From: Anthoceros angustus
Taxonomy: Eukaryota > Plantae > Anthocerotophyta
Assembly (NCBI GenBank): GCA_010909165.1
Contig: VJWM01000019.1
Span: 62,001 to 126,000 of the forward strand
DNA: 64,000 bases
Direction of reading: 5' to 3'
Shown: one piece after another, positions 1 through 62,555 of the stretch
Position numbering within the stretch: position 1 is the first letter of the stretch
Layout of the letters: each line of letters opens with the position of its first letter
Made by a program: the position numbers and the translations under genes
Notes under the pieces: generated by a model
The model's database searches: none
The model's input: the letters and a program-made list of their open reading frames with translations, nothing else
Told to the model about the DNA's origin: nothing

Positions 1-3000
1 CTACAAAGAATCAAGAGTGTTTTCCGTTGGTACGGTCTAGGTGTCACTTTCTCCCCAAGAGGGAATGGAAAACCTATAACAACGATACAATACAAAGAAT
101 CAAGAGTGTTCTTGTTGGTACGGTCTAGGTGTCACGTTAAGATAAAGATCACAAGATCGAGGCCACTGAGCTTGAAAATTGCATGCTACTTGGTTCTTGC
201 GAGTCACGGTGTCGACTTCAAGCAATACCATGCCATAGTGAGGAAGATGATAAAAGACCACAAAGATCGACGAAATGATGATGATGTCGTGTCACCGCGC
301 ATATGACCTCGGCAAGACCACGCCTCGGTGAGGGTTAGAGCCTCACCATGCTTGTAAGATGTCTTGGAGCAAAACGTGTTGAAGTAGGACACTGGAGAGA
401 AGACGAAGATGAAGTCATTGTCGGATAATGAATGACAACATACACGTACTAGTCGTATGAAAATATTAGGATTACATTGCATATACTTAAAGAGAGAGCT
501 TAATATAAGCGTCTTAATTGAGCCTACTTGGAGATCATAGCTCTTTAATTGAGCTTGGTATGGTCTGGAGAGAATATGTTTGAAGACAGCATGGAAATAA
601 CAGAGGATGCCTACATCAAAAACATTTGGACCGCCAGAGAGACTATGAAGTGGTGTGCAAACAATGGATACGAGGAACCAAAGGCGCCTAGCTTGGAGGA
701 AGCATCTAGATGCGTGAAGATGTTGGTGAGAAAATCTTCAATCAATGACATAGATTATAATCCCGAGGTGGAAGTAGATGAGGACGCAATTATCAAGACG
801 TGGATGATGATGTACATGAAGAACACGAACAATCGGATAAAAGACTTTAGTAATGGAGAAAATGTAGGTATTAAGACCGATGAGCAATTGGAGGAAGACT
901 TAAATATCAAAGAGGGTTTTCACATTCATGGAAGACTTAAATTATGAAGTACACCGACCAAGACTTAAGTAATGAAGAAGATATTGATGAAGAATTAAAT
1001 GATGGAGAAGATTGTGACAAAGACTTTAAGTAATGAAGAAGATTTTGAGGAAGACTTTAGTGATTGAAAGAGATTCGGATGAAGACTCAAGTAATTAAGG
1101 AGACACTCACGAATTCATGATGAAGTCAAGGTCGAGTATGAAGCATTGTACAATGAATGATAAAATATTGATCTAAGGAATATGTACGAGGTATGCATAA
1201 GGACAAGAACAAAAGTTTGACCGTTTATAGCTTTTGCGATGGAGTTGGCCACGCACATGTATGGCTCTTTGTCCTTACTTACTTGGCCTGGAGTTCCGGT
1301 GAACCCTAAGCCCACGAAGGGGTAGGAGCTACAAACAAGAATTGCAAGGGCTCCTCATGAGCGGATGGAAGAAATTATTCATGAGCATGGATGGCATGCT
1401 CGATGGAGGCTAGGGTGGCAAGCTTGTGAGTTCAACCTATCCCACTTGCGTTGTGTATGGACACCGCCTACTTCAGACATTCCCTTCATTGGCTGCCTTT
1501 TTGCTTCCTACAGAAAGCCCTTTGAAACAGTCACCGATCTCCGGATAAATTGTCGCCACGCTTTAGAATTGCAACCGAGCCCATGATGGGGTGTGTTCGA
1601 CGATCCTCTTGTACCTCACTTGCTTTCCCTCTTTCATTACCACGTTTCCAAAACCTAACACCTTGATTGTCCTTGGCGTGTGCTCCCCAAAGAAAGAAAA
1701 GGAGGAGGGAATAGCGCTGAGCTGCAAAGGTCTTCTCGACAGCCCATCTCACCTCCTCCATGCTCGTATGCGATGCTCAATCGATGTAGGAATTCAAAAT
1801 ATAGGAATCCGGACGACGATCCGGGTGATGTCACCGCAAGTTACTTTGTGATAGCTAGATTGATGATGGTAGACATAGTTACTATTTGGAACCTCACTTG
1901 GAGGCTACAATAGAGGGATGGTGGATTGCTCCATATGCAGACAATCGAAATGATGTGTTGAGACATGTGTAAGAGCATGGTTAATTAGTTTTAATTGTAC
2001 GACAAATGACATGATAGGTTGAGACATGTACAAGAGCATGCACAATTTGGATAAATGACATGATATGTTGAGACATGTATAAGAGCATGCCTAATTTGTT
2101 TTAATTATATGATAAATGTATATTTTTCCCCAAGAGGGAATGGAAAACCTATAACAACGATACAATACAAAGAATCAAGAGTGTTTTCCGTTGGTACGGT
2201 CTAGGTGTCACTTTCTCCCCAAGAGGGAATGGAAAACCTATAACAACGATACAATACAAAGAATCAAGAGTGTTCTTGTTGGTACGGTCTAGGTGTCACG
2301 TTAAGATAAAGATCACAAGATCGAGGCCACTGAGCTCGAAATTGCATGCTACTTGGTTCTTGCGAGTCACGCAGCGACCGACTTCAAGCAATACCATGCC
2401 ATAGTGAGGAAGATGATAAAAGACCACAAAGATCGGCGAAATGATGATGATGTCGTGTCACCGCGCATATGACCTCGGCAAGACCACGCCTCGGTGAGGG
2501 TTAGAGCCTCACCATGCTTGTAAGATGTCTTGGAGCAAAACGTGTTGAAGTAGGACCGGAGAGAAGACGAAGATGAAGTCATTGTCGGATAATGAATGAC
2601 AACATACACGTATTTAGTCGTATGAAAATATTAGGATTACATTGCATATACTTAAAGAGAGAGCTTAATATAAGCGCCTTAATTGAGCCTACTTGGAGAT
2701 CATAGCTCTTTAATTGAGCTTGGTCGATACGGTAGCTTACTCGAGATAGATTAGGAAGGATGTCATTCCAAGTGAGGGTCATTATGTTGTAAGATTAAGA
2801 AAAATTGGACCCAAGTGAAGATTATTGCATTAGAAAGTTAAATTGTTGTAAGTAGCTACTATTCTAAATTTGGAGCATAGTGTAATAGTAGTATTCTAAG
2901 CATAATAATAACATAAAATGAACAATACTATAGTTAGCTCATGGCCCTTTATAAAGGTTTAGCGGCCTAGAATTCATAAGAAACACTGTACTATAGTTAG

Positions 3001-6000
3001 CTCATGGCCCTTTATAAAGGTTTGGCGGCCTAGTATTCAAAAGTTCTATCGTTAGCTCATGTGTTTCGTTCTTCACTTGTGGTGTAAAGTATATCTCAAC
3101 ATCAAGATATTATATGTTTTGTGTCCTATATATTTTGCTACGTGTCGACTTTATGTGTTTCGTTCCACACTTGTCGATAAAGCATATCTCAACAACGTAT
3201 GAAAAGATTATAATTGCATCACCTATATTTGAAGATATACATGTATTAGCTCTTCAATTGAGCCTACTTGGAGATCATAGCTCTTTAATTGAGTTTACCC
3301 AGATAGTAGGTCCTCCATTAAAGATTCTTCTCTAGCTTATTAATAAGCTTTCAATACCAATATATTGGACTTGTTATATTGGTACTTGTGGAGTGAACAA
3401 TTCACGAATGAAGATAACAAACTCATCAACTTCGAGAGTTCGGAAGAGGATACAATATCCGTTCTCCACACTCATTCCAAAACCAATCACATACTCGAAG
3501 ATGGCGAGTGGTCCTTTACGTGCACCTCAATGTCTTCAGACGATTTCCCCTTCCAACAGTTGAAGCAAAAGAGTCGGATATGGGTGGTCAGATGCACCCA
3601 TGCCTTGGCCGGGTCCAAACGACATGTGGATGTGGAAAAGTTTCGGTAAGCCTCAAAACGTGATCCATATTGGGCGAGTAGATCTTTGACCGCTCCACTA
3701 GCGTTTTGCAAGAATAGCGAAAGGAGCAAGACCTTTAAGAGCAAGGAAGCATTCGCAGATATATGAAAAGAAATTATCCGAATTAGATGTGGATGATTTT
3801 TCTTATCTTTTCAATGGAAAGTGCCTATCAAAATTGAAGTTGACGACTCTATTGATAATCGGAGAGAAGACAAAGATAAAGTCGACATCGAATACAAAGC
3901 ATCATCAAGACTTACTTTGTGTGGACTCACTTCTTAATGAATCGACATCGGCGACTTTGGAAAAGTCATATGTACAAAGAAGGAAGAGGAAGACTCGATG
4001 ACGCAGATGCGGATTTGAAGCGTTTTTGTGCAAAGTTCATGTCAACATCCTCATCTTTGAAGAGGTCGCTCACGAGTCCAACCACGGTAATGATTTTGAG
4101 AGCAAGAAAACCGCGAAAAACCTAGACAATTTGCAAAGAAACCTCTTGTAGAGCCATCGCCTTCCCAAGAAGGTAGCTTGCCTCAAGCAAGTCTTGTGCG
4201 GGTGGATACGGTGGTGAAGCCGCCATCTTACCTTCTCGCCTATTTCAAGGAGGCTCATGGCGAGCCTGTGACCGTGGTCTCTGGAGCCGTTCGAAAAGAA
4301 ATGTTTTGGGCTTGGTATGGTCTTTGGGAGAGAATATGTTTGAAGACAGCATGGAAATAACAGAGGATGCCTACATCAAAAACATTTGGACTGCCAGAGA
4401 GACTATGAAGTGGTGTGCAAACAATGGATACGAGGAACCAAAGGCGCCTAGCTTGGAGGAAGCATCTAGATGCGTGAAGATGTTGGTGAGAAAATCTTCA
4501 ATCAATGACATAGATTATAATCCCGAGGTGGAAGTAGATGAGGACGCATCAAGACGTGGATGATGATGTACATGAAGAACACGAACAATCGGATAAAGAC
4601 TTTAGTAATGGAGAAAATGTAGGTATTAAGACCGATGAGCAATTGGAGGAAGACTTAAATATCAAAGAGGGTTTTCACATTCATGGAAGACTTAAATTAT
4701 GAAGTACACCTGGACCAAGACTTAAGTAATGAAGAAGATATTGATGAAGAATTAAATGATGGAGAAGATTGTGACAAAGACTTTAAGTAATGAAGAAGAT
4801 TTTGAGGAAGACTTTAGTGATTGAAAGAGATTCGGATGAAGACTCAAGTAATTAAGGAGACACTCACGAATTCATGATGAAGTCAAGGTCGAGTATGAAG
4901 CATTGTACAATGAATGATAAAATATTGATCTAAGGAATATGTACGAGGTATGCATAAGGACAAGAACAAAAGTTTGACCGTTTATAGCTTTTGCGATGGA
5001 GTTGGCCACCGCACATGTATGGCTCTTTGTCCTTACTTACTTGGCCTGGAGTTCCGGTGAACCCTAAGCCCACGAAGGGGTAGGAGCTACAAACAAGAAT
5101 TGCAAGGGCTCCTCATGAGCGGATGGAAGAAATTATTCATGAGCATGGATGGCATGCTCAAGATGGAGGCTAGGGTGGCAAGCTTGTGAGTTCAACCTAT
5201 CCCACTTGCGTTGTGTATGGACACCGCCTACATTACATTCCCTTCATTGGCTGCCTTTTTTGCTTCCTGAAAGCCCTTTGAAACAGTCACGATCTCCGGA
5301 TAAATTGTCGCCACGCTTTAGAATTTGCAACCGAGCCCATGATGGGGTGTGTTCTGACGATCCTCTTGTACCTCACTTGCTTTCCCTCTTTCAGTACGAC
5401 GTTTCCAAAACGTCTAGATGCGTGAAGATGTTGGTGAGAAAATCTTCAATCAATGACATAGATTATAATCCTGAGGTGGAAATAGATGAGGACGTAAATA
5501 CTGAAGACGTGGATGATGATGTACATGAAGAACACGAACAATCGCAAAGACTTTAGTAATGGAGAAAATGTAGGTATTAAGGCTGATGAGCAATTGGAGG
5601 AAGACTTAAATATCAAAGAGGGTTTTCAAATTCATGGAAGACTTAAATTATGAAGTACACCTGGACCAAGACTTAAGTAATGAAGGAGATATCGATGAAG
5701 AATTAAATGATGGAGAAGATTGTGACAAAGACTTTAAGTAATGAAGAAGATTTTGAGGAAGACTTGAGTGATTGAAAGAAATTCGGATAACGGTAGGAAG
5801 GAAGGAAGGTCGAGAAGCATCGAATGAAGGAAGGAAGGTCGAGAAGCATAGAATGACTTCATGTGTGCCTCGCACTTGCTAGGATGATTTTAAGAATGGC
5901 CCGGTGAGAATTAGTTGAAAAGTATGATCAAGGTCATTAGAGGTGTGCCTGAGTTAAGTTTTGAAACATGTAGGACTCTTTATTGAATAGGGTCCAGGTA

Positions 6001-32650: not shown

Positions 32651-32828
32651 TGTGAGTGACGTTTCCTAATTTTCCTTCTGTTGTTTTCTGATGCGAGGTG
32701 GTCCGTTTCTGAGTTCGATGCCTACCCACTTTCTTCTGTACGCGGCTTAGGCGAAGGGCTGTATTGCAGGAAACGAGTGGATGGCTTGACTGTTGCTTCC
32801 ATAGGCTCAGCTCGTGCACGTACAAGCC

Positions 32829-35822
32829 ATGGCTGTCTGGAGTGGGGCGATTGAGTCACTCAAAGGGCAACAGGAGCCGTTGGGGGGACAGATTTCGTGG
32901 ACCCAACAGACTGCTGGCTTTACTATTGTTCTAGGAAGAGGATCCGCTCGCCTGACTTCAAGGACGCAAGCGTTGGCAAACAGCGAAGTCGCCAAGTGCA
33001 GCACTAGTGCCAGAAAGACTTCCTCCAGCGAGGGCAGGCCTGCAGGATACGACAAAGGGTTAACTGCTGAAACCGTGAGCAAGCTATGTGAACAGGGTCA
33101 TCTCAGTGAGGCTGTTGAGGCATTGGGAGTTCTGCTGCAGACAGAGGGGTCCATTTCCAAATCCCTCCTTTACACTGTCCTGAATAAATGTGTAGTGAAG
33201 AAGGATCTGGTTCTGGGTCGCCGGGTCCATGCTGTGACGGTGAAAAAGGGGTACCAGTCAGATACGTTCCTGGGCTTCCACATCCTGCGGATGTATGCAT
33301 CTCATGGCAGGTTGCAAGACGCGATGGATGTGTTTCAAGTGATTGCCAAACCAGATGCGTTTACTTGGTCTGCTATCATATCTGCGCATATCAAACATGG
33401 ACAAGACCGAGATGCCATACGACTGTATCATCGGATGTGCAGGTCGAAGGTGAAACCAGACGGCCATGTATTTGTGGCAGCCCTTCAAGCTTGTGCTAGG
33501 GGCTTAGACTTGAAAACAGGGCAGCAAGTGCATGCTAATGTATTGGCCAGTGGCGTTGAGCCTGATTTGTTTGTTTGTAATAGCTTGGTGAACATGTACG
33601 CCAAATGTGGCAGCTTGGAAGACGCTCAGAGGGTGTTTGACGGACTTGAGCGAAAAGATGCTGTGACGTGGAATGCCATGATAGCTGGGTATTCCCAGCA
33701 GGGCATGGGGCAGGCAGCTCTTTCTCTCTACAGTGCTATGCAAGGAGAAGGTAGCGCTGTGCCTGATTCTGTGACGTTTGTGTGCCTCCTACAGGCATGT
33801 GCAAGGGTTGGTACCCCAGCGTTAGAGAAGGGAAGACAGCTTCATGCGCAGATCAAAAAACAAGGATGTCAAGCTGATGTGTTTGTGGGTGGCAGTTTGG
33901 TGAACATGTATGCAAAGTGTGGCAGCTTGGACGATGCCCAAAAAGTGTTTGATGGACTCGATCAAAAAGGGGTGGTGACATGGACTGCTCTAATTGCAGG
34001 GTATTCCCAGCAGGGCATGGGCAAGGAAGCGCTTAGTCTTTACAAGGTTATGCAAGAAGAGGGCATCGCTGTACCCAATTCTGTGACATTTGCCTGCCTC
34101 CTGCAGGCATGTGCGAATGTTGGCATCCCGTCTATGGAGACAGGGAAGCAACTTCATTCTCAAATAAGAGAACATGGACATGAAGCTGATGCGTTTGTTG
34201 CCAGCAGTTTGGTGAACATGTATGCAAAGTGTGGCAGCATGGAAGATGCTCAGAGAGTGTTCGACGGACTTTGTCAAAAAGAGGTGGTGACATGGACTGC
34301 ACTAATATCGGGTTACTCCCAACAGGGCATGGGGCAGGAAGCCCTCCGTCTCTACGGTGCCATGCAGCAAGAGGGCATCGCTGTACCCAACTCCGTGACA
34401 TTTGCGTGCCTCCTGCAGGCATGTGCACATGTGGGCACCCCAGCGTTGGAGCTAGGGAAGCAGCTGCATACGCAGATTAGAGAACAAGGACATCAAGCTG
34501 ATGTGTTCGTTGGGAGTAGTTTGGTGAACATGTATGCTAAGTGTGGCTGCTTGAAAGATGCTCAGATGGTGTTTGACGGGCTTGATCAAAAGGATGTGGT
34601 CACGTGGAACACCTTGATAGCAGGGTATTCCCAGCAGGGCATGGGGCAGGAAGCTCTGTGTCTTTACAGTGTTATGCTAGAAGACGGTACATCTGAACCC
34701 AATTCCGGGACATTTGTGTGCCTTCTGCAGGCATGTGCAAGTATAGGCACCGATGCTTTGGAGGAAGGGAGGCAGATTCATAAGCAGCTTAGGGAGCAAG
34801 GACACGAATCTGATGTGTTTATAGGCAGCAGTTTGGTGAACATGTATGCAAAGTGTGGCAGCTTGGAAGATGCTCAGAGTGCGTTTGATAGGATTGGTCA
34901 AAAGGATATTGTGACCTGGAACGCCATGATAGCAGGGTATTCCCAGCAGGGCATGGGGCAGGAAGCCCTTGGCCTGTACACAACTATGCAGAAAGAAGGC
35001 AGCACAGTACCGAATTCTGTGACATTCGTATCCCTCATTCAGGCATGTGCGAATGTGGCAGCTTTGAATCTGGGAAGGCAATTACACGCACAGATTGTTG
35101 AACATGGACTTCAAGCGGATGTGTTTCTGGCCCACAGTCTGATAACCATGTACGGAAAGTCTGGGAGCATGGTTGATGCACAGCAAGTGTTCGACGCGTT
35201 AGCGGTAAGAGATGTTGTAGCCTGGAATGCACTGATTGCAGGCTATACCTGTCAAGGAGACAGTGATTCTGTGTTTGACTTGGTCGAAAGAATGAGAGAG
35301 GATGGTATACAGCCAGTTGGCATCACATTCGTTAGTATACTAACAGCGTGCAGTCATGCTGGCCTCTTGAACAAGGGGCGAGAGTACTTTGAGGGTATGA
35401 GCAGACATTATGACATCACTCCCACCGCAGACCACCTCACATGCATGGTGGACATCCTGGGTCGTGCAGGAGAGCTGGATGAGGCATTAGATTTGATAAA
35501 GACAATGCCTGGGCTGCGCGATGGCGCAGTTTGGAGTACTCTGCTGGGTGCTTGCAGTAAGTGGAACAATGTGGATGTGGGACGTCACGCATTCGATGAA
35601 GCAGTGAAGCTGGACAACAAAGATGCCGCAGCATATGTGTTGATGTCGAACATCTATGCTGGTGCGCAAATGTGGGAACAGGCAGTGGAGATGCAGAACA
35701 TTAGAAAAACACTGGGGGCATGGAAGCAGCCGGGTCAGAGCTGGTGGACAGACATTGACGGACGGGTGCATAGTTTTCTGGTTGTTAGTAAGAAGCATAC
35801 CGGGACTGAAGCAGGGCCGTAA
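32829..35822 (+). CDS. PLS-class PPR protein (organellar RNA-editing factor): L-S, (P-L-S)x6, P2-L2-S2, E1, E2 and a WW-type PG box; DYW deaminase truncated
   Basis: Intronless ORF of about 997 aa from ATG 32829. Repeated triplets VTWNAMIAGYSQQG / VTFVCLLQACA / SLVNMYAKCGSLEDA. E motifs AVWSTLLGAC and AAYVLMSNIY. Ends KQPGQSWWTDIDGRVHSFLV...*. Confidence 0.95.
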   Translation: MAVWSGAIESLKGQQEPLGGQISWTQQTAGFTIVLGRGSARLTSRTQALANSEVAKCSTSARKTSSSEGRPAGYDKGLTAETVSKLCEQGHLSEAVEALGVLLQTEGSISKSLLYTVLNKCVVKKDLVLGRRVHAVTVKKGYQSDTFLGFHILRMYASHGRLQDAMDVFQVIAKPDAFTWSAIISAHIKHGQDRDAIRLYHRMCRSKVKPDGHVFVAALQACARGLDLKTGQQVHANVLASGVEPDLFVCNSLVNMYAKCGSLEDAQRVFDGLERKDAVTWNAMIAGYSQQGMGQAALSLYSAMQGEGSAVPDSVTFVCLLQACARVGTPALEKGRQLHAQIKKQGCQADVFVGGSLVNMYAKCGSLDDAQKVFDGLDQKGVVTWTALIAGYSQQGMGKEALSLYKVMQEEGIAVPNSVTFACLLQACANVGIPSMETGKQLHSQIREHGHEADAFVASSLVNMYAKCGSMEDAQRVFDGLCQKEVVTWTALISGYSQQGMGQEALRLYGAMQQEGIAVPNSVTFACLLQACAHVGTPALELGKQLHTQIREQGHQADVFVGSSLVNMYAKCGCLKDAQMVFDGLDQKDVVTWNTLIAGYSQQGMGQEALCLYSVMLEDGTSEPNSGTFVCLLQACASIGTDALEEGRQIHKQLREQGHESDVFIGSSLVNMYAKCGSLEDAQSAFDRIGQKDIVTWNAMIAGYSQQGMGQEALGLYTTMQKEGSTVPNSVTFVSLIQACANVAALNLGRQLHAQIVEHGLQADVFLAHSLITMYGKSGSMVDAQQVFDALAVRDVVAWNALIAGYTCQGDSDSVFDLVERMREDGIQPVGITFVSILTACSHAGLLNKGREYFEGMSRHYDITPTADHLTCMVDILGRAGELDEALDLIKTMPGLRDGAVWSTLLGACSKWNNVDVGRHAFDEAVKLDNKDAAAYVLMSNIYAGAQMWEQAVEMQNIRKTLGAWKQPGQSWWTDIDGRVHSFLVVSKKHTGTEAGP

Positions 35823-35975: not shown

Positions 35976-38900
35976 TCAGTGATCGTAACCAAAGGGATTC
36001 GAGGCAGGATCTTCACGATGCTCCTTGTAAGTTCTCACCAGGTCTTTAACAATTTCCTGAGTTTGGATCAATACAGGTGTCACCAGTTCTGCAGACAAAA
36101 GCACTGGTGAGAAACATGGGGCAAAGGCAGTAACATCAAGAGCAGAGTATTGCAATGTGGCTTTCAAAGTGGTGGGCACCTGCACTCTCTGGTGTGTTGT
36201 CAGCAAATATCTTCTTCCATTGTGTTGCAACCGCTTCAGCCCGGTCACCAAGGATGTCAACCAGATTTTTTCTCTGTTCCAGCTTTGGATCAACTTCTCT
36301 TTGCTCTGCTGCAAGTCCTGGAAGCACTCCGACTAGCTTACCTCCGTGCATTTTCAGCCTCTTCTGATCAATAGGAGGACTGTTGTCTGGCTTGTCTTCT
36401 CTCTCACATTGCATCAAGCGCCAAATCAAAGCTTCCCGCAGAAGGTAGCAAAGCCATGAAGACGTGGCTTGATAGAGAAGAGACGGGGGCTTCCGGTTGT
36501 CGTCTGCTACTTGTGACTTTCGAATTGACAGTGAGACCAGCTCCTTATGCGGTGCCATCAGAGTAATCTGATAACCAGCCTAGAGTAATAAAGGCACGTC
36601 AGATGACCAAAGTGGAAGCACTAAAACATGCAATGCGGTTGGTACTAAGATGCCATGTCTGGGGGACATAACAGTGATCCACAACGAGACTTACCTTGGA
36701 GACCAGTCCCTGCTGCTCCAGATCTCCGAGATGCAACTTCTGCCAGCAGTTTTGCACCTCGACATCTGACATATTTCCTAGAAAAAAGCCATCCAGACTG
36801 AAACTCCCAGATAAACTGGAGGTAGTGCCGCCATCTGGATCCTGTCTACTGTCATTTGTAGTAGCCTCAGATGTGAAATTCCACGTTGTTGTGGAGGTTA
36901 AAGACCGAGAAGTCCCTACTGGAGGAGCCCTTAAGAAAGACAGGACGTCAACACGATATTGGCACAACAAGAAACTTACAGCTCCAGGAAACTGACTTGT
37001 CCTATCTCCACCACCTTTAGGAAGAAGCACCCCTCCTTCCACGATCTTCCTACTACCCAACCGTGCTGCTACTATTGCACTGCTGGAGGATGTGATTCCA
37101 ACATTGGTGCAGCAGCCAGCGCTGCCATTCTCAGCTGGATTGGAAACAAGGAGTTCATGGTAATCGTGGAGGTGACATAGGAAGATGGACACAATTACAG
37201 GTGAGAGATAACTTCCAGGGAGTTCCACCTGAAGCTCATGACTAAAATGGGAACCAGACTGCAACCCTTCACCGTTGTTGATAACTGTAGACATATACAT
37301 AGCCACTGGTTTGCAGCTTGGTCCCACGCTTTCAAATTTTAGAATGAGTGTCCAATACGAAGACAGGGCGTAGTCACTGAGATTCTGAAGATCAACAGAA
37401 ACTTGAATTGAAGGAGAATTTGACAGACTGCTAGCTGTCCCTTTTGAAGTAAGAGGTGTGGCAAACACCAACTGCTCTGGAGAGACAATCCCTGAGGGGA
37501 ATTGATTTACCTGCAAGGTACAATGAAAGCCTTTCCAGCCCGTGTTCGCAGTCTTGTTTAATGGCTCAGCTCCTGGTAAGGTGGTTGGTGACAGAACCAC
37601 GGATCTAACATTTCTGTTGGACAAGTCATACGTAAGATACAAAGATACAGCGAGTTCATTGATGGCTGTGTTAATAGCACGACAATGATTCCTCACAGCC
37701 TCTGTCTGTCTGGCAATGTCTGCCACAGCTTGTAGGAGGTTCTGCACCAGAAGAATCACTTTGTCACAAGAGTTTTCACCTGAACAAACGAAAATGGACC
37801 CGCAATCCATAACCAAGAACTCTGGCTGACCTTTACTTTCTCTTTTGTCCGTGCTTGCGACATAGCCCAGCTATGTGAACTCTCGACATTAGGTCCTCTA
37901 TCATCAACCGCATTTGAAGCAGGCTCATCAAGGACTTCCACTCCAATGAGTCGTCCGCGTGTTGTCAGTACCACGAGTGGCCTGCCATTTAACGCCCTTC
38001 CAGCACCAGGATTGCCTGCTACCGCACAAATACGATCTGCTACAGGTACTGTTTTGTGTAGGAGCCTGTGCCTCAATTGCTTTCCGAATATGCGAGTTTG
38101 AGATAAAGTAGTGGATGCTGAGCCAGGCTCAAATAGTTCAGCAACAAAAACTTCAGCCCCAACTCTATAACATAAGTGCCGTGATCCAAGCATGCAAGCT
38201 GATGAAACTGGTGACTTGACGGACCACTTGTGAATCCCCACATCAGCGGTCACCTGAATGCTCCCTGCATCTTTGCAAGGGAGAAATGGGCTATCATTTG
38301 ATTCTTGACCTGTAGAAGTAAGGGCAACAACTGTACCCGACTGTCCAACAATCAGCATAATGTCTGGTCCAATAAGCCCTGCAGATTGGCCATCTTGAGA
38401 ATCAGAAGAAAGAGGGAGCAGGGCTACAATCGGTTCCTCGATGTCAAGCAGGACTCTTTTTGTCATTCTTGTCAGCCTTAAGTTAGGCATGGCATAAATG
38501 TATACCTTCCCATGGTCGTCACCTGAACTTCCCAAGGAGGAAAGAATTAGGAGACAAAGTCAGCACAGTTTACGTCTTAACCAACAGCGAGAAGAAAAAA
38601 TGGGCTACCTTGGATAAGTAGATGGCGTGGCATCATTTCCACTCCTTTTCCGGCAAGACAACTAAAGAGTGCTTCAGACAGCAAAGTGGCCATGTTTTTA
38701 CCTCCTGAATGGCTTGTTCTAGCACATGACACAAAAAGCAAACAAGTCGGCTCACTGTTTATGTCGGCTGTTGGCCTGAGACCTGTTGACAGCTGGTCAG
38801 GGTACTGCGCATTTGTGGAACCTGCTTCAAGAAGAACTGGGGATCCTGCTTGTGCCATGATAATCACCTTGAAAGACATATAACCTCAAGCATAAGCAGT

Positions 38901-39861
38901 TACTTTTACTAACATTCAGTGCTGCACAGCTGAAATGGAAGTGAACCCCCCCAATGAGCCAAGAACTTACTGAGCTACTTGTGCTAAACAGGCCAACGGT
39001 TGCAGCCTGCAGAGACCCCAGAAGTGTCTCTGCAGAGACTGAAGTTGGTGTCAAAAACTGCGTTTTCCTCGAATACCCCGAGACATTTAAGTTGGCCCAT
39101 AGCAGACGTGAGATGGCCTTCTGGTAAGCGTTCCATGACTCTCCAGTTTGCATGCCCTTGGAGAGACCTCCAGCGAGACTTTGTTTATGCACGTTTTCCA
39201 CCACGGGGCAAATACTTTCATCGTATACATCGTTATCCTCAAAGAGCTGCCATTCCTCGCCGGGGAGCTTGGAATGATCGCCAAGCTTGGCATGACTGCT
39301 TGTGTTTGGTACCAAATTCAGACCCGTAGCTGAAGTCCTACTTCTGCAAGGAAATGGGAAACCAGTTTCATCAAGATGCATGCACATGGAATATGTGGAT
39401 CAACAGTGGCTTTTTGAAAACGATGAAAAACTTAACACCAGACCTAGAGATGGAAGGGCCCTTGCTCGCAATCTCGAGAAGGAACACAGATCCATCTGCA
39501 GTGATGACCAGCAAGGAGGCACTCCGTGTACTAGTCTTTTTCCCCACTTCTGCGGTGTCCACCCCCTTTTCCTCATTGAGGTCCCCGAGCAGTAGAAAGG
39601 AAGGATCGGATTGAAATCTATAAATTGACTGCGCAGCCGATTGAGAACACCGTGGAATTAGCACCCTGCTTAATGTTCACAAAGGATCCCCCAGGCGAAG
39701 CTAACCTGCAGGACGCCGTCCTGGAACACGTGGATCAGACAGGGCGAGGCTCGGCAGGCAACCCAAAACAGCGGTGTGGGTCCTAGTGCGAATCCCGTCA
39801 GGAGAGGGCGGCCTGATATCCTGAGCTTAGCCCACTCCTTGTGCCGTGCTTGCTTCCGCAT
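35976..39861 (-). CDS. FAAP100: Probable FAAP100 (Fanconi anaemia core complex-associated protein 100) homologue, about 8 exons; last exon 36088-35976; start codon uncertain
   Basis: Colinear blocks resembling human FAAP100 as remembered: LLSEALFSCL, VLLDIEEPIVALLPL, DIMLIVGQSGTVVAL, WSVKSPVSSAC, LVVLTTRGRLI, KEKVK|NLLQAVADIARQTEAVR (coiled coil), LQNLSDYALSSYWTL, PVIVSIFL, LVRTYKEHR. Confidence 0.72.
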
Positions 39862-40634
39862 CTTTGCAATCAATAATCTCTTTACAACGCTGGTCTACCG
39901 TGGCGAGAATGCCGGCGGTGCCACAGCCGGGTCCTGAGCCTGAAGTTGTTCCCAGCTCGTGGTGCAAAGAGCTCTTCGCATTCTTCAGAAGGTGGAGAGA
40001 AAGACGGGGGGAAACTTTCTGCATCGACGAGTTATGTCCTGTGGCTCTCCACATAAACTCGATGGGCTGACAATTTGCTACGCTATAGTACTTTGGCTCC
40101 GAGACACTGGGTCGTAGGTGTGGATGTGGAGAAGATGTCGTCGGAACCTCAATGACATCTGAGGCCTCCACCATCAAGAACTGGGTTGTGTGAACATGGT
40201 GCTAATGCATGTACGTAACCCAGCCAATGCTTCAGCAAGCACCTGCTCTGCAGATATCAGTCTGCTCGTCGAGCATGAGCCTTAAGGACTAGCTTGATCT
40301 CCGCTACTCCACAGTTGCACGGCCTGCTTATCTTTTGTCTGCGTTTTTAGCAATCGCAGAAGTCATGTCAGAAGGCATCTGGTTTGGCATCAATCGCCTG
40401 AGCTCACAACATTTCGTACAGGGCTTGTGGAGGCGAGAGTTCACGACGTCATGTCATGTAACATGGTCTGCTGTAACTTTGGCTGTCGGGTTCGCCATGT
40501 TCGTTGCCCCATTGCTTAGCAAGATGGCCCTGTGCATAAACGGCATTGGTACAATTTGGCAGCGTTGCAAGAACTGCCAGGGTACATACTTATGTATGTC
40601 GCTGATTCCGTGTGGAAGAAGGGGACAAGAAAGA

Positions 40635-43600
40635 TCACAGACGAGATAGCCCGGTGATAGGTGAGGCAATGGACATGTGGATTCTGCTCAGATCCAGCTT
40701 GGGGTTTCGCCTGATGGATTTGCCCGCATGAAACATTTTCATCAGTTGCTCCAGCGCCTTGACAACCTCAACAACTGTGGGCCTGGCTGTAGTGGCGGGG
40801 TTGACGCACCACACCGCCATCTCCGCAAGCTTCAGCAGAGCTTCTGGTTTCTCAGGCACTGGCAGCCGGGGATCTAAAATGCTCAGCCCTTGCCCGCTTT
40901 CGATCAGAGGGACTGCTCGTGCGACCTGCAGCAACGACGTCACAAATAGACGGATTCTTCAACATGAGCCTATCCTTGCCAGTCATAGGATTGCCATTGC
41001 AGACAGTCACAGCACACTTCAGAATGTAACGATTACCAGATGTGATCTTGTGTGGCCTGAATTGAAGGTCCCGGTATCTAGAAGTTGTCGGCCTGTGAGA
41101 ATCTCTAACACTATGACCCCGAACCCGAAGATGTCGCCGGCCTTGGACACCTGAATGCTGCCAGTGCTCTGGCCTCGGCTCAAGGGAGAGCCAGGGAAGT
41201 GGTGCGACGTCGGTACCCACCTTGGGTCAGAAAAGAGCTCCACCTGGTCTCCGGTGGCGCAGAAAACGGCGAGGTGGAATCCGGAGATGCGGGGAGCCCA
41301 AGATTTGTCCAGCAGAATGTTTCTGGATTTCAAGTCCCGGTGGATCACGCAGGGATCCGCGAAGATGTGCAAGTACTCGAGCCCCCTGCAAACACAATGT
41401 CAGCAAGTTGTGCTTCCAAGAAATTCACTTGGATGCTGCTTCTTGGAATTGGAGATCAGGCGGTGTGGAAATCTGCGCTCACCTTGCAACCTGAAGGGCA
41501 ATGTTCAGTCTTAGCTCCCAGCCCAGCAGCAACTTGGAGTTCCGGCCTTCAGAGCCGGTGATGGGCTCTCTTGGACTCAGGGGCCCGATTAGCGCGTCCC
41601 TCAAGCTCCCGTTCTCGGGGTGCTGGAACACCAGGAGCCTGCCAATGGGGTCCGGAGAGTATCCCACCAGCTGCACCACATTGCTGTGCTTCAAGCCCGC
41701 AAGAACTTCCAGCTCTCGGTTGGCGGAATTGAAGTCCATGGACGGCGACTGCTTCACCGTCACCAGTCTGCCATCTCCCAACACGCCCCGGTAGATCTGC
41801 CCAGCACGCCCGCGGTACACCAGGTTGGCCTGGTTGAATCCGCCAGTGGCCCTGGAGATCTCGGCCACAGGGAAAACGGTCCTCTTGCTGGCGTTGAGCA
41901 GGAAGAGAGCTTCTCTGCCTATGCCTAACCGCTGCACTGAACGCTTGACAAGGCCCCTCTGCTGTATCCTTCGATTGGAGCAGCACAGCACTGTCCCCAC
42001 AACCAGCATGAAGGCCACGCCCAAGATGGATGCTGTTATGCCTGCAATCAGGGCTTCTCTGCTGGAGTGGTGCCTTCCCAGGAGTTTGTCTGGGCTGGAG
42101 ATGACGAAGCTTGCCTCCCAGCCTAGGCCGCCTCCTGCTTCCGTGGAGAACACCACCAGCATGGGGCCCTCTGTCGTGATCTGTAGCCACAGCACATGTA
42201 CACACAGAGGTCATGGGTATTCATCATCATCCATGTTCGGAAGGAGCATGTGCAGCGACATTGAAAGGCTGAGCCGGACCTGAGGAGGCGGATTGGTGAA
42301 GTTGCCAGAGAAGGTCTGGATGGGAGTGGAAGAAGGAGTTATGGCGCGTCCACTGTAAACAGCCACAGTGTCCTTGCTGCTCACTGTGTTGATTCTGCTG
42401 AAGCTCAGAAGCACAGGCGTGTGTGGCTTGCCCAGAAGTAGCCAGCTGCAGGACAGCCCCCTGCCATAGACCTGTCCATCAGGGCTGCCGTCGGAGATAT
42501 TGCCTGTTTTGCTGTTGATGATCTCTTGCCCTTGGCAGAACCCTGTCATTAAAATGTATGGCTCATGATCAGTACTACTACGACATGACGCACCAGCAGA
42601 AGACATGCAGCGGAAAATGTACACCACATTCTTTACCAGCTTCATACTTCAGGATCCAGCCGTTGGCACTGGGGCTCACAACGCTGCGGGTGCTGAAAGT
42701 GATGAGCATAGCAGGGCCTTCAACCACGGCATCCACGAGATGCTGGTCATACAAAAATCCCCCAAACTGAGAGGAGCAGCCGCTTGCAAAGGGTGAGGTT
42801 GCATTCAGTGCATCAGCCAAGGCAAGCAGCTTCCTTGAATGCTGTCCTGCAGTCCACAAGGCCGCGTTGGACAGCAAATTTGCCCCACCCAATTTGTTGG
42901 GGTTGTCCGAGCAGGAGGCAGAATCCGAGAGGATGTTCACAGGGTTATCCGGCGGCACCGCAAGAAAGATCCACCACAAGTGGATGAACTTGGCTTGGGT
43001 CACGTTCACGATCCAGCTGCACCTGAGGTTGGGGCTGTACGGCTGGAGGCCGAACTTCCCGTCCACGATGAGCCCGTTCTGGATGGTTCTCTCAGCGTCT
43101 GTTACGATCACCGTCCCCCCGCACGCATCTGAATTAAGCCCAACATACCTCCATCAGAGCCTGACATGAAAGCTACTAGTGCCACAATCTGGTAGCCTGG
43201 TGACATCCTCCAGACCTCTGCACTGCAACAACATCATCATTTCAAACACTCTCTCCAACCAAGCATCTGATGAGTCACCTGGAAGCATCTGCAGCATGCA
43301 ATTCCCGTGCTCCACGCTCCACAGCTGCTGCACCAGGAAGCGGGATCCGTAGATGCCCACCAGGTTGAAGCTCACCTGGTTGTCATCTACCACAGGGCGT
43401 GAGCTCGGGTCCGGGTTCATGATGGGCCAGGGGCACACCTGGCTAATTGTGCGATTGTCCTGGCTCCGCCATCCTTCCCCGTTGAAGGCAGTAGCCGTCT
43501 CCGCCAGCTGGCCCAGCATGCTGGAAACGAGAGTGTCCAGCCCCGAATCCGCGTTGGGCGGACTTAGCAGCGCCTGCGACTGGCTCCAGAAGTTGCAGAA

Positions 43601-44425
43601 GTCGCCCATCACTGGCTGCTTGCTCCACACCAGCTTCAGCAGCGGGCCCTGGTCCAGCGACACGGGGTACGCCCCGGAGCAGGAGCAGGAAAGAGCACCC
43701 CCCATGGCGTCGTACGCGAACTGCACATCCCGGCTGAACACTATGTAGTAGACAGCATCCTCCTGCTGCGGCAGAGTGCAGTTGAGGCCGCCGGAGCTCT
43801 GGAACGCCAGGGCAATCACGGCGTTCACATCGGCATCCGTGACATTGCCCCCGCTCCCGCTGTAGACGCACTCCGCACCCAGCGTCACATTGTTTGTGAC
43901 AGGCACCTGGTCAGGACCTTTGTACTGCCGAACAATCTCCCACCATCTCTCCACCGTGGGGAGATCTGCACCAGGCCCCGAGGTCTGATTCTGGGTGTCC
44001 GGGGTCAGGGATCGGAAGGCAGTTCTGACGACTGCTTTGCTGGGCTCCTCCCACGGCCCGAACCAGATGAGATGGACGGTGATGGGCGTCCCCATGACCC
44101 TTCCTTCTACTCCTCCTTTCAAGGAGAAATTGGCTGGAGGGCCGGATCCGGAGCCATCGTCACCCAGAAGCACTCGCTGCCGTCGCTTCTTCACGTTCGC
44201 CCCCGGGCGTGAGGCGGCATAGGAATTGACGCTCTCCAGGGAATCGACACGCCCCGGGAGGCTTCCTCCTGCATCGCGTTGATCTCTGGGGAGCGGGAGT
44301 CGGGTGAAGCGGCGATGCGGCGGCGATGCATCAACGTTTCCATGGACACCGGGCGCCGGGCGAGCGAACGAGGAGGCCGAGGCGAGCAGCAGGAGGATGA
44401 GGAGCGAGACAGCCATCTCCCACAT
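40635..44425 (-). CDS. Receptor-like (pseudo)kinase with PHI-1/EXORDIUM and two CUB ectodomains, about 1079 aa; exons 44425-43279, 43128-42637, 42542-42280, 42180-41483, 41385-41037, 40925-40635
   Basis: Signal peptide MAVSLLILLLLASASSFA. PHI-1 motifs GRVMGTPITVHLIWFGPW, PTVERWWEIVRQY, PPNADSGLDTLVS...LAETAT and FNLVG...RFLVQQLW. CUB1: CGG...YSPNLRCSWIV...MLITFSTRS...GWILKY. CUB2: CQG...GNISDG...YGRGLSCSWLL...MLVVFSTE...GWEASF. TM ALIAGITASILGVAFMLVVGTVL. Kinase with VTVK and HRDLKSRN. All five introns are GT-AG with phases 1,1,0,2,0, totalling 3240 nt. Confidence 0.88.
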
Positions 44426-44829
44426 CCAGCTCTCTTGCCTTCCATGGGAAAGCTTCCTGCAAAGCGTGTTCCGAGAGCAGGCCAAGAAAGGATGCTTCAG
44501 TGGAGCCAGTGTGGTTGCTAGGGGGCAGGTTTCCTTGCGCTAAGGCACAAAGCCGGCGCTGGGTCCATGGAGGAGGGCCAGGGAATCACGGCGGCAATTG
44601 CGAGTGAGAGATCTGTAGCCAGCACTCCGCCAGTCCTGCCAAACTTCAGGCACGCCATTGCAATCGCCCAGGAGGCCTCCAAGTGGCGACACCTGCGCTT
44701 CTCAAGGCTCAGTACATACAATATTTTTGTGGAATTTAGTTGGTAGTACGGACAACAAATAGACATATTGAATATGAGTTCAGTTTCTTGCACTTCTTGC
44801 CAAATCTTTATATCTGGACTTTGGAAGGA

Positions 44830-58047: not shown

Positions 58048-61000
58048 ATGGTTACATCTTCTTACAGTGTAAAGCTCAGCCGCATTCTTCCTGGACAACC
58101 TCATCGCAGATGCGTGCTTCTTGCCATCTTCCTGCTCCTAACCAGTCACAGCCAATCAGCCCAGCCTCCCATTTCCACAATTTCATCTTCGTACGCTACT
58201 AGTTCAAAGCTGACTGGGAACGCCACAGGGGTAGCTTGCGCAATAGCTGCTGACGGACTCCGATCTGTGCAATGCTGGGGGCAGGATTCGAGTCTGGTCA
58301 CAGTACCAGGTGTTCAATACGGCCCCTCCTTTGGGCTTGTAGCGGGTGCTTCCTTTTTCTGTGGCCTGTGGAGCAATTCAAGCGAAGGTACGACTAGCCT
58401 CACAAGAGCTGCTTGCTGGAGTGCCGAAAATCTCTCTCTGGAGCTTCCCTTGCCGACAGAATACAGGACCGTCGCGTTCTCTACCCTGGCCGCTGGGGCT
58501 TCGCACGTTTGCGGAATCGTCTCCAACTCCAGCGGTGAGATGTTGCTTTCCACGCACCTTGAAGCTTCAATCCGTTAGCAAGCTTGACTCCAGACTTGGC
58601 CTCCGTACTCGTTTTTCATCTTGGTCCTTGTTGATGGTGGTGCAGAGCCTTGGCATACCGGCGATGTCCTGTGTTGGGTTCCGGAGCCAAATGACACAAC
58701 ACCTGCGAAACCGGCTCAGCCTTCACCCATCTATCCTTTGGGTTCGTATGCAACCATTGCGGCTGGGAACAACTTCACCTGCGGAATCCCCGCCCTGAAC
58801 CAAACCTCGCTGGTTTGCTGGGGAGATATCCCGCCGGGGATCTCACGTTCAGCAGGCTTTGAACCCGTGGATCTAGCAAGCGGCGGCACCATCCTCACAT
58901 CCGATTTCCGAGAGACGCTCCATGATTACACCTTCTCTGCCATATCCGCCGGAGATTCCCATGTCTGTGTGCTTATTGCTTATTCCTACCAAGTGGGCGA
59001 TAGTCTCAAGCCCACGCGCCAGCCGATTTGCAGGGGAGCAGTCACCACCGGCCGGTTTCCCCTGCCCAACCCACCTGATGCTGGATTCAGTCTGCTTGTT
59101 TCAGGTGTGTTGGACGACAACCCAACTTCGAATTCGGTTTCAGCTTGCTCAAGGCAGCCACTGACTGACAGGAGCTCCCTCTCTGTTGTTCCATCTTTGC
59201 TTGAAATCACACAGGGACGGATTTCAGCTGCGGGATCAGATACAATGACAGCCGGCTACAGTGCTGGTCGGATCGGAAAGACGAGGGACCGGGGTTCCAG
59301 TTCCCCATCCCCTCAGCTCATGAAATCCGAGCTGCATCCGCTGGCGGCACCTTCGTGTGCGTAGTAGCCGACACGGTTGGCGACAACTCCGTTCTCAGGG
59401 CTTACTGCTTGGGAGAAGGGGCGCCCAAATGTCGGATATGTGGGTCCGACAGATACCTCCAGAATGGCTCTTGCGTGAGCAATAATACGGGGCTCTGCAT
59501 AAGCTGCGACACTTGTGGGGACGATGCGTGCAGCAGGATGTGCCCTCAGCATGAAGGCAACAGTGATACGTCCCAGAAGAGCGGGGACTATGCGTCCCCT
59601 GATCCGGAACCCGGCAAGGATACGAACAGGCCCTGGGTTCGCACCACCTTGGCTTGTCTGCTGGGCGTCACCTTCGTACTTGCGCTGCTGCAGCTTGTTT
59701 ACATCCTGTCACGACTGGAAATCAAAGGCCACAAATTGGTCCCAGGAATCCCAGCCTTCCGCTCTGTTCAGCACTTCCACGAGCAGGAACACTTGAAGGT
59801 GTGTTGGACTTAGTTTTTGAGGTTCCTATTTGAGACTAAGCTTTGTGAACACAGAAGTGGTACAGACGCAATGCCATGCGATATGCAATGCAGGTCACAG
59901 AGTTCACATACAGGCAGTTAGAGATGGCCACAGAAGGGTTCAGTGATAAAAATCTGGTTGGCAAGGGCAGCTACGGCCATGTGTTCAAGGGCACGGTGCA
60001 TTGCCCTGTCACAAGGCTGGTTGCGGTGAAGAGACTGGAGCACAAACCCGCCAGCTCTATGCATAATCGATTTGTGGATTTCGACAGCGAGCTGAAGCTC
60101 CTTGCGCGTCTGCACCATCCCAACCTGGTCAATCTTGTGGGGTTCTGTCATGAGAGAGGGCCGGAAGCCAAGTTCAGGGTGTCACCTCACGGCATTCGTT
60201 GTGCCATCAAGTATGCCATTCACAGGTGAGGCTCAGAGGAAGACAGTCTGCAACTTAGCCTGTTTTTGCAAGTTCACATTTGCTTCAGCATGCATGCATC
60301 TCACTGAAGTTTGGAAGCATGCCTCGTGCCCTTGAGCAGCTACAAGTACGCACAACACCATGCTGCAGCCCTCTCCGGCTCGGAAGCAGGCCTGGAGAAA
60401 CAGGAGCAGGGAATCATTCAGGACCGGCGGCTGCTTGTCTTCGACTACATGGAGAATGGCACTCTATACGACCATCTGCACGGCAAGGGTGACACTCTGG
60501 AGAGCAGCACAGTGCAGCATCTGAGCCAGCTGGTGTCCGCCTGGGCTGTGCGGTTGCGGGTGGCAGGTGTGTGTTCAAACCCTAAAACTCCATCTCTCAG
60601 TGTTTGCCCTCGGCACTGGCAAGGCAAACTAACTTGGATGCTGTGATGCCTTCATCGCGCAGCACAAGCGGCCAAGGGATTGGAGTACTTACACTGCATG
60701 GTCCCGCCGGTGATACATCGGGATGTGAAATCCTCCAACATCCTTCTGGACATGGAGTGGAACGCCAAACTGTCCGACTTCGGCATCTCCCGGCTGGGGC
60801 CGCAAGGCCAGCAGACGCATGTCTTCACCGATCCTAAGGGCACGCCGGGCTATTGGGATCCAGAGTACTTCCGCACCTACCACCTGTCCCTCAAGAGCGA
60901 TGTGTACGGGTTCGGAGTAGTCTTGCTGGAGTTGCTCACAGGCCAGAAGGCCATTGACAGGCAGCAGCACCCGGATGGAGACGCCAACCTTGTGAGCAGA

Positions 61001-61879
61001 TGCAGGTGAGGAACTCTTATCCCACTCCCGATGTCTCACTCCTCTTCCTGCTCCTGCTCCTGGAGGTTGACCGGCTTCATCCGTTGGTGCTCAAATCCCA
61101 GATCCTTAATACAGGATGGCCAGATTTCCGCAATTCTGGATCCCCGCATCCTGGAGGGAGACCGTCGGCAAACGGAGTCCATTTGCAAGCTGGGCAACAT
61201 CGCTGAGATCTGCGTGCGTGAGTCGCAGAAGGAGAGGCCAACAATGAGGCAAGTGGCATCCTGGATAGAGCAGCTGGTGCAATCTCTTTCCGGGCTACGG
61301 CACTCCCTGGACTTCGATATTGAATCTGAAACTTTCGACAACCCGCTGGTTTCCAACATCGGCCGTGGGATGGGCAAGTCTCAAAGTGTGGTCTTCAGGG
61401 ATGGGGCAGCCATGAAACATATCCCAGGTAACGTGCGCGTGAATTCCCGCAGAAATCCATCAGAGAACACCATTCCCGAGGTCCCCGACGAAGGCCTCAC
61501 AACCAGCAGCGCAGATGACTCAGGCCGGGAGACTATGGAAACCCAGCGATCTAAGCATGCTGCTGCACCGGCCCCTTGTAATGCTCCGGGCATTTGCAAC
61601 CTAGGGGTGCCTAACCCCCCAGCTCCTACATCGAGCGACAGGACTGCAAGTCCGGAGCTGTCCCCAGGCTGCAGCCAACGCTTCCAGCGCGGAAAGCGCA
61701 GTCAGCCTCCCTTCACGAAGTCCTCCCATCCCGGATGCAACCAAGACCGTGTCACACTCGGGTCCACTACTCGGTGCTGCTCCAAAATCCAAAGCCTTCC
61801 CTCAACCACCCAGGCCTGGCCCTCTTACTGCATTGAGACCAACTCTTACCATAACCAGACAATCGTTTCCAGCAGTTGA
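58048..61879 (+). CDS. CRINKLY4-family receptor-like kinase; exons 58048-58534, 58646-59104, 59215-59798, 59894-60225, 60340-60566, 60663-61005, 61102-61879
   Basis: Signal peptide; crinkly/RCC1-like repeats ([57 protein letters not shown]...LQCW); Cys-rich segment; [22 protein letters not shown]; intact kinase motifs [31 protein letters not shown]. Confidence 0.9.
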
Positions 61880-62555
61880 TGTTCCTGCAAGGATCATCTA
61901 TTCAGGATTCAACCCTGCCAAGAGCTAAAAGGACCTAGTAAAGCCTACCAGTCGAACGCAGTGTGGGTAGATCTGTAGGCTAAGTGTTCTCCATTGAGTG
62001 GATAGATCTGTAGGCTAGGTGTTCTCCATAAAGTACTTCAAGTGTTTTCTGTGATGACAGGCACCACCCTGTCAGTTCCTGGTCGTGGGATGCTCGTGGC
62101 AGTGGGCCGGAAAAGGTTCTCTGGACACGAAGAATGTCCTGGATGCTCCAGCTGGAGCCTGCTCATTGGAGAAAACAGGGCAAGTAAAGGAAAGCCAAGC
62201 ATTCACCACTGTGCAACCGTGACCATATGCAATGCACCCTCCATCAGTCGTTAGTGTCCTAGCTAGGACCAGAACAGTCCAGAATTAGTGAAAAATGCTT
62301 CAGGACAGAGGTTGCTAAGCGCTCAAACACTCTTTGTGGGAAACGTGTCTTCCATCCATTCCCACCAGTCAGTTCAAGCCAAACAAAACAGCGGTGGATG
62401 CACAGGCAAGATCTGGAGTGACACATCTGGAGTCAACTGAGCATCCGGAAGGCGAAGGTGCGGACATTTGACATGGCAATCAATCTCCTTTCACGATGTT
62501 ACCTGATCGTGAGTCGCCAAATGCAATTCCTGCAGGAGTCCCAGCAACAAGAAGC

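Follow-up and report, generated by a model that had tools for sequence, protein, structure and literature searches.

The locus described here raises the question of whether an EXORDIUM-type domain, two CUB domains and a receptor kinase domain that lie one after another in a hornwort genome belong to one receptor, whether such a receptor is peculiar to this lineage, and whether its kinase domain works as an ordinary kinase. The locus lies on the minus strand of a 64,000-nucleotide (nt) stretch of Anthoceros angustus DNA (positions 62,001 to 126,000 of the forward strand of contig VJWM01000019.1, GenBank assembly GCA_010909165.1; hereafter the window, with positions counted from its first letter). 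The analysis indicated that the gene very probably encodes an intact, expressed, type-I single-pass receptor, the earliest-branching one found of a land-plant-wide family with the order Phi_1 (EXORDIUM), CUB1, CUB2, transmembrane (TM) helix and receptor-like kinase (RLK)/Pelle domain, and that its intracellular part is most likely a pseudokinase.

Transcript, exons and domains

The gene is intact, with its ATG at 44425 and its stop codon at 40635-40637. A single 3611-nt contig from run X1 (organism A), which is 100% identical to the window and spans 40421-44582, joins six exons and has had five introns removed, all of them GT..AG on the minus strand and, in order, of phases 1, 1, 0, 2 and 0. 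Because these five canonical introns were excised precisely, the gene is transcribed. The in-frame pieces of 382, 163, 87, 232, 116 and 96 amino acids (aa), together with three split codons (D, G and R), give a protein of 1079 aa. An earlier reading made from the sequence alone (the sequence-only reading) had proposed the same six-exon, 1079-aa model, which is borne out by the X1 contig and the phases, and the two junctions on which it had laid stress, 43279/43128 and 42637/42542, are both present in the spliced contig. Contigs from two related organisms, B and C, are 90-95% identical and have their joints as in the X1 contig; one from organism C extends from the 3' untranslated region (UTR) into the Phi_1 exon.

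Domain tests, profile searches and fold predictions were performed with the individual exon pieces as queries, and the Pfam cut-offs used were the curated ones. The result showed that exon 1 matches Phi_1 (PF04674) with 82.2 bits against a cut-off of 25 (E 5e-23), over profile positions 5-274 of 276. The AlphaFold model of this domain is confident, with a predicted local distance difference test value (pLDDT) of 89.9 and a predicted template-modelling score of 0.90.

For CUB (PF00431), with a cut-off of 21.4 bits, exon 2 scored 15.1 bits and exon 3, in which the domain is cut by an intron, scored 20.3 bits over positions 1-77 of 110. The orthologues that align in the same order gave CUB scores of 35-62 bits in two stretches. 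A CUB1 profile with exon 2 as its first row matched nothing but CUB chains in the PDB, cubilin being first (E 3.7e-7), with further matches to PCPE-1, C1s, MASP and neuropilin. In the AlphaFold model of exon 2, pLDDT is >80 for the core and residues 70-129 form a disordered insert; all of the top 50 Foldseek matches of the model were CUB domains (E from 1e-4, template-modelling score by target up to 0.68). This insert of ~60 residues is lineage-specific and predicted to be disordered. The fold evidence covers CUB1, that is, exon 2, as CUB2 is split over exons 3 and 4. Taken together, the orthologue scores, the profile and the fold confirm the identity of the CUB domains.

The kinase profile Pkinase of Pfam was matched by exon 5 with 42.8 bits and by exon 4 with 25 bits. 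The PDB chains matched by these two exons all belong to RLK/Pelle, IRAK or RIPK proteins; Pto, BRI1, SYMRK and BAK1 lead, and FERONIA, CERK1, FLS2, IRAK4 and RIPK3 are found further down. The order Phi_1, CUB, CUB, TM helix and RLK/Pelle kinase, as it had been read from the sequence, is thus supported by the exon-wise domain evidence.

Two features of the transcripts were observed in addition. The 5' UTR contains two upstream AUGs, both in a CCATGG context, of which the one at 44568 opens an upstream open reading frame (ORF) of 16 codons and the one at 44445 opens a frame of 84 codons that is out of frame with, and overlaps, the main start at 44425. Organism B has a short contig that keeps intron 3 and another in which it is spliced out, and a 2973-nt contig from organism C keeps it too. 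The intron-3-retaining form would encode a truncated and possibly secreted Phi_1-CUB ectodomain.

Relatives and intron positions in vascular plants

An exhaustive HMMER search of 1.84 billion representatives was performed with exon 1 as the query. The best matches were Selaginella and angiosperm proteins of 814-894 aa that carry Phi_1, CUB and Pkinase. A search with an alignment as the query gave ~25 additional full-length angiosperm proteins whose precomputed Pfam domains are the same three, among them sequences from Prunus, Nyssa, Acer, Camellia, Tetracentron, Trema, Pistacia, Hevea, Punica, Actinidia, Quillaja, Asimina, Amborella and Dioscorea; a word-index search with the Selaginella protein alone returned a Selaginella paralogue only, so that the alignment query was needed for the angiosperm set. 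Relatives that can be named are XP_002962591.2 and XP_002980498.2 of Selaginella moellendorffii, AMTRI_Chr01g129700 of Amborella, KAK9274295.1 of Liquidambar and a 'Phosphate-induced protein' of Trema orientale; the proteins of the family are annotated as 'uncharacterized' or 'hypothetical' or bear generic names. No member from Brassicaceae, grasses, Marchantia or Physcomitrium was among the matches of the homology searches.

The six exon pieces of the window gene match 30 or more family proteins in identical order, with 28-41% identity per exon. The motifs GLQPY in CUB1, GW..Y.AG.C at the joint of CUB1 and CUB2, and SW..(K/R)(L/I).GF in the kinase domain are common to the family. A tree of 134 Phi_1 domains was built by a quick search, with support from the Shimodaira-Hasegawa-like approximate likelihood ratio test (SH-aLRT) and a midpoint root. 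The result showed one clade of 45 rows (SH-aLRT 99, branch 0.86) that unites all the fused proteins and, with them, short fragments of exon 1 that come from raw assemblies; in this clade the window gene branches first, as sister to the rest, followed by Selaginella, Amborella and the other angiosperms. This branching order matches plant phylogeny, which argues for a single old fusion and vertical inheritance. As judged from the tree, the window gene appears to be the earliest-branching member among those found.

The splice sites of the Selaginella and Amborella loci were solved against the annotated proteins. Both genes contain GT-AG phase-1 introns at the places of window introns 1 and 2: one interrupts the codon that lies two residues ahead of the initial Cys of CUB1, and the other a Gly codon at the same distance ahead of the initial Cys of CUB2. 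Window introns 3, 4 and 5 are absent from both genes. Because the introns that flank CUB1 share codon and phase in three lineages, CUB1 is an ancestral 1-1 exon. The phase-1 introns that had been noticed at the borders of the EXORDIUM domain with CUB1 and of CUB1 with CUB2 therefore recur at the same codons in Selaginella and Amborella; the proposal that the protein was assembled by exon shuffling is compatible with a 1-1 CUB1 exon, which is no proof of it. These comparisons show a family at least as old as the last ancestor that this bryophyte-grade lineage shares with vascular plants.

What the window gene shares with the Phi_1-CUB-CUB-kinase proteins of vascular plants is the order of the domains, the Phi_1 clade, the two phase-1 intron codons and the loss of the DFG Asp. 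It differs from them in length (1079 aa compared to ~810-910 aa), in a low-complexity N-terminal extension of ~75 residues, the insert of CUB1 and an insertion in the activation segment, in three extra introns, and in having GFH where the vascular-plant proteins mostly have GFG, next to an intact HRDLKSRN.

In a survey of receptor kinases, the metaRLK preprint (10.1101/2023.12.21.572927), CUB/Phi_1 is one of the 20 most frequent ectodomains made up of several domains. This preprint was the only relevant result of a literature search for EXORDIUM, CUB domain and kinase, and a literature search found no functional study of Phi_1-CUB-kinase receptors. The sequence-only reading had taken the architecture for an unrecognised, undescribed RLK class. 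This claim does not stand, because the architecture is already catalogued in the Selaginella and angiosperm annotations (~25 angiosperm genomes) and in the top 20 of the metaRLK survey. What appears to be new from the present analysis, on sequence grounds, is the single clade of fused Phi_1 domains, the ancestral introns of CUB1 and the stepwise loss of catalytic residues described below. The practical value of these findings is modest before a ligand or a phenotype is at hand; the architecture was already present in public annotations and one survey.

Some of the relatives showed features of their own. On the Selaginella sequence GL377567.1 (L001:1-1295, 1501-4304), at least two Phi_1-CUB-kinase genes, encoding 908 and 894 aa, lie in direct tandem, and further Selaginella paralogues were found (P0003 and P0151); the family is locally expanded in Selaginella. 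A 914-aa protein from a EukProt transcriptome (P0022/P0149) has Phi_1, a TM-like stretch and a complete kinase domain (139 bits), with CUB absent. The His of the helix motif of Phi_1 (see below) is absent from it, and it joins the receptor clade weakly (support 44, long branch of 1.84). It may represent a precursor that had no CUB or a fusion that arose independently.

The kinase-like domain

In the N-lobe encoded by exon 4, the lysine of VTVK and the Glu of helix alpha-C are present. Alignment to BRI1 gave IHRDLKSRN as the catalytic loop, with HRD at 41334-41342, and showed that GFH replaces DFG at 41274-41282 (S-G-F-H in the window gene, S-D-F-G in BRI1) and that the APE Glu is absent. The set of catalytic motifs is thus incomplete: the kinase of the window gene has the Lys and HRD, carries Gly for the DFG Asp and lacks the APE Glu.

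The segment was located in 31 relatives, none of which has either the HRD Asp or the DFG Asp. In place of HRD, 26 of them carry HGN, while HGH, HRS, HLN, HRN and HAN occur once each; in place of DFG, 27 carry GFG, while RFG, GFR, GFS and GFH occur once each. The window gene differs from these 31 relatives in that it has lost the DFG Asp but keeps HRD. The retained HRD is taken as a probable ancestral state and not as a ground for excluding the gene from the family. Since HRDLKSRN is kept in the window gene and gone from every vascular-plant member examined, the loss of the DFG Asp probably came first and predates the split of the lineages, and that of the HRD Asp followed in vascular plants. 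The view that the EXORDIUM module is tied to an ordinary membrane signalling domain found no support, given that the DFG Asp is missing in the window gene and in every one of these relatives.

Receptor pseudokinases of the RLK/Pelle type in plants include BIR2, STRUBBELIG, CORYNE and MRH1. Like these, the window protein is a single-pass receptor with an RLK/Pelle fold in which a key catalytic residue is missing, although for the window protein we infer the inactivity; the ectodomains of these four proteins are of the leucine-rich repeat type and unrelated to that of the window protein. The receptor as we propose it would have a secreted N-terminus, three extracellular modules and one TM helix, with an RLK/Pelle fold that lacks the Mg-binding Asp inside the cell. 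The intracellular domain would be a pseudokinase, or at best an atypical kinase, and by analogy with BIR2, STRUBBELIG and CORYNE it may serve as a scaffold or co-receptor that signals via an active partner kinase. The window copy would represent an early or intermediate stage of kinase decay.

Several points weigh against an intact and expressed receptor pseudokinase. That run X1 consists of RNA is a guess, and transcription is concluded from the removal of introns and not from a library record. The domain scans and folds cover the 1079-aa protein exon by exon; the CUB pieces of the window, taken alone, score below the Pfam cut-off; and the Phi_1 tree is the product of a quick search, with SH-aLRT as its only support and a midpoint root. 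Ahead of the main start lie two upstream AUGs whose context is good, which makes the efficiency of translation uncertain, and leaky scanning or reinitiation may be required for the receptor to be made. In addition, the VAIK Lys and alpha-C Glu of the window kinase are still in place, as is its HRDLKxxN loop in full, and kinases without the DFG Asp can stay active, as in CASK, which has GFG. Because these residues are kept and activity of the CASK type is possible, the loss of activity in the window kinase can only be presumed.

The last of these points leads to the alternative that the kinase of the window lineage is atypical but active and that dead kinases occur in vascular plants only. The intact HRDLKSRN loop, VTVK lysine and alpha-C Glu of the window speak for it, by contrast with the HRD Asp lost in 31 of 31 vascular-plant relatives, as does the Mg-independent activity of CASK-type kinases that lack the DFG Asp. 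However, the change of the DFG Asp to Gly is accompanied by the absence of the APE Glu, by a degenerate glycine-rich loop and by an insertion of ~25 residues in the activation segment compared to BRI1 and the relatives, and the family-wide loss of the DFG Asp implies that purifying selection on catalysis probably ended early. We consider an active kinase improbable, though it deserves to be kept in mind, and prefer the receptor pseudokinase.

Much less credit can be given to the idea that the window gene stands for a new, lineage-restricted RLK class and resembles the vascular-plant proteins through convergent domain assembly. Such an origin would agree with the identity of 28-41% per exon and with the features peculiar to the window gene, namely the long N-terminal extension, the CUB1 insert, the three extra introns and the retained HRD. 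It is very hard to reconcile with family-specific motifs that the proteins have in common in each of the domains, a single Phi_1 clade at a support of 99, introns identical in codon and phase, and an architecture that is named in the metaRLK survey. Finally, that a secreted PHI-1 gene and an adjacent CUB receptor kinase gene were artificially joined, by read-through or chimeric assembly, is scarcely conceivable: plant Phi_1 proteins stand alone as a rule, contigs cannot prove a single molecule and run X1 is not recorded as RNA, but the joint of exons 1 and 2 is an exact in-phase GT-AG splice in organisms A and C, no stop or start codon lies between the parts, and the same fusion occurs with the same intron codon and phase in Selaginella and Amborella and in ~25 further angiosperm proteins. 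The analysis considered, and rejected, that the locus is a pseudogene, that the contig is chimeric or that the gene is a novelty of this lineage only.

The Phi_1 module, feature coordinates and neighbouring genes

The Phi_1 family profile found no relative by sequence in the PDB. A Foldseek search with the Phi_1 model gave no match at E <= 0.001, the best match being ulilysin (6e-3), with fragilysin also among the top ones. With VIA-align, the top 14 matches of the model were metzincin catalytic domains with Z 6.1-6.7, a level that the tool rates as middling. A literature search on the Phi_1 fold found nothing. Most of the stand-alone algal and metagenomic Phi_1 proteins carry the motif A-H-E-x-x-E on a long helix that follows a PPN(G/A)D motif; the His of this H-E-x-x-E helix motif is absent in the receptor clade and in the land-plant EXORDIUM (EXO) type. 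The modelled fold and the missing His suggest that the Phi_1 domain of the receptors may be a binding module without catalytic function whose ancestor resembled a hydrolase. Because the His of the Phi_1 helix is absent and CUB is a binding module in every solved example that was matched, the ectodomain formed by Phi_1 and CUB would serve to bind a ligand and not as an enzyme. The sequence-only reading had named wall or carbohydrate status or microbial partners as conceivable signals for such a receptor.

Long multi-domain Phi_1 proteins were observed in the streptophyte algae Closterium and Mesotaenium (P0011, P0049 and P0026). One of these has 845 aa with three matched Phi_1 stretches, and in another Phi_1 is combined with a cytidylyltransferase-like domain. 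The existence of such algal proteins implies that Phi_1 is a mobile module well beyond the EXO form.

The Phi_1 domain of the window is not of the classical stand-alone secreted form but is the N-terminal module of a membrane protein of 1079 aa. The stand-alone EXO and EXORDIUM-LIKE (EXL) proteins, for example MpEXL8 of Marchantia, have in common with it the PF04674 domain, the PPN(G/A)D motif, the long helix after this motif and the absence of the His. They differ in being soluble proteins of ~300-400 aa without CUB, TM helix or kinase, and they fall outside the clade of fused proteins. Arabidopsis EXO and EXL1 have roles in cell expansion and in brassinosteroid and carbon responses; these roles cannot be transferred to the window gene.

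Secreted proteins without a kinase, in which Phi_1 is followed directly by a single CUB domain, occur in the moss Ceratodon purpureus (KAG0602003.1) and in the lycophyte Diphasiastrum complanatum (KAJ7564402.1 and KAJ7529016.1). Their CUB domains score 25.8-31.5 bits, above the Pfam cut-off. Compared to the window protein, they have one CUB domain, lack TM helix and kinase, keep H-E-x-x-E and form a separate Phi_1 clade (SH-aLRT 99). The animal proteins cubilin, neuropilins, Kremen, C1r/C1s/MASP and PCPE-1 share the CUB beta-sandwich and the phase 1-1 CUB exon with the window gene, whereas their identity to it is 11-18% and their partner domains are others.

We know of no established biochemical action for EXORDIUM/PHI-1 proteins, and a conserved receptor with Phi_1 and two CUB domains on its outside offers a route to asking what Phi_1 domains bind. 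A wider reading, which we put forward as tentative and rather doubtful, is that the family is an old receptor pseudokinase of land plants that was overlooked because the model plants are without it, and that its Phi_1 domain came from a metzincin-like hydrolase. If this were true, EXORDIUM-type proteins would be 'dead-enzyme' binding modules, the receptor would be the first to connect such a module directly with signalling at the membrane, and the hornwort-type copy would show a kinase dying step by step.

The features of the gene are listed in the following table.

Table. Parts of the Phi_1-CUB-CUB-kinase gene, given as positions in the window in 5' to 3' order of the gene
Feature	Position	Strand	Basis
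5' UTR in the transcript contig	44426..44582	-	X1 contig
Exon 1: signal peptide, low-complexity N-terminal stretch, Phi_1; ends in phase 1	43279..44425	-	
Predicted signal peptide, residues 1-21: hydrophobic core, then S-F-A	44363..44425	-	Read from sequence
Phi_1/EXORDIUM domain, residues 107-377	43295..44107	-	PF04674 match; AlphaFold pLDDT 89.9
Intron 1, 150 nt, GT..AG, phase 1, two codons 5' of first CUB1 Cys	43129..43278	-	
Exon 2: entire CUB1, phase 1-1 exon	42637..43128	-	
Intron 2, 94 nt, GT..AG, phase 1, splits the Gly codon that is two residues 5' of first CUB2 Cys	42543..42636	-	
Exon 3: N-terminal three quarters of CUB2	42280..42542	-	CUB 20.3 bits
Intron 3, 99 nt, phase 0, contains an in-frame stop	42181..42279	-	
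Exon 4: end of CUB2, stalk, TM helix, juxtamembrane region, kinase N-lobe	41483..42180	-	
TM helix, 25 hydrophobic residues followed by basic residues	41980..42054	-	Read from sequence
Intron 4, 97 nt, phase 2	41386..41482	-	
Exon 5: kinase catalytic loop and activation segment	41037..41385	-	
Intron 5, 111 nt, phase 0	40926..41036	-	
Exon 6, coding part: end of kinase C-lobe, C-terminal tail of ~30 residues, stop 40635-40637	40635..40925	-	
3' UTR within the transcript contig	40421..40634	-	X1 contig

Elsewhere in the window, a second RLK-type kinase gene was found on the plus strand at 59885-61282, which is 35-42% identical to the kinase exons of the receptor gene; the ORFs at 58048-59813 upstream of it are a possible ectodomain and have no Pfam match. 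At 32814-35822 on the plus strand lies an intron-less ORF of 1002 aa that encodes a pentatricopeptide repeat protein with a C-terminal E motif, of the organelle RNA-editing-factor type. A neighbour of this type agrees with a non-vascular land plant as the source, and so does the place of the receptor gene in the Phi_1 tree. Three long ORFs of 405, 259 and 186 aa, with no Pfam match, lie on the minus strand at 36599-39387, immediately 3' of the receptor gene, and short contigs from organisms B and C stop at about 40300-40372.

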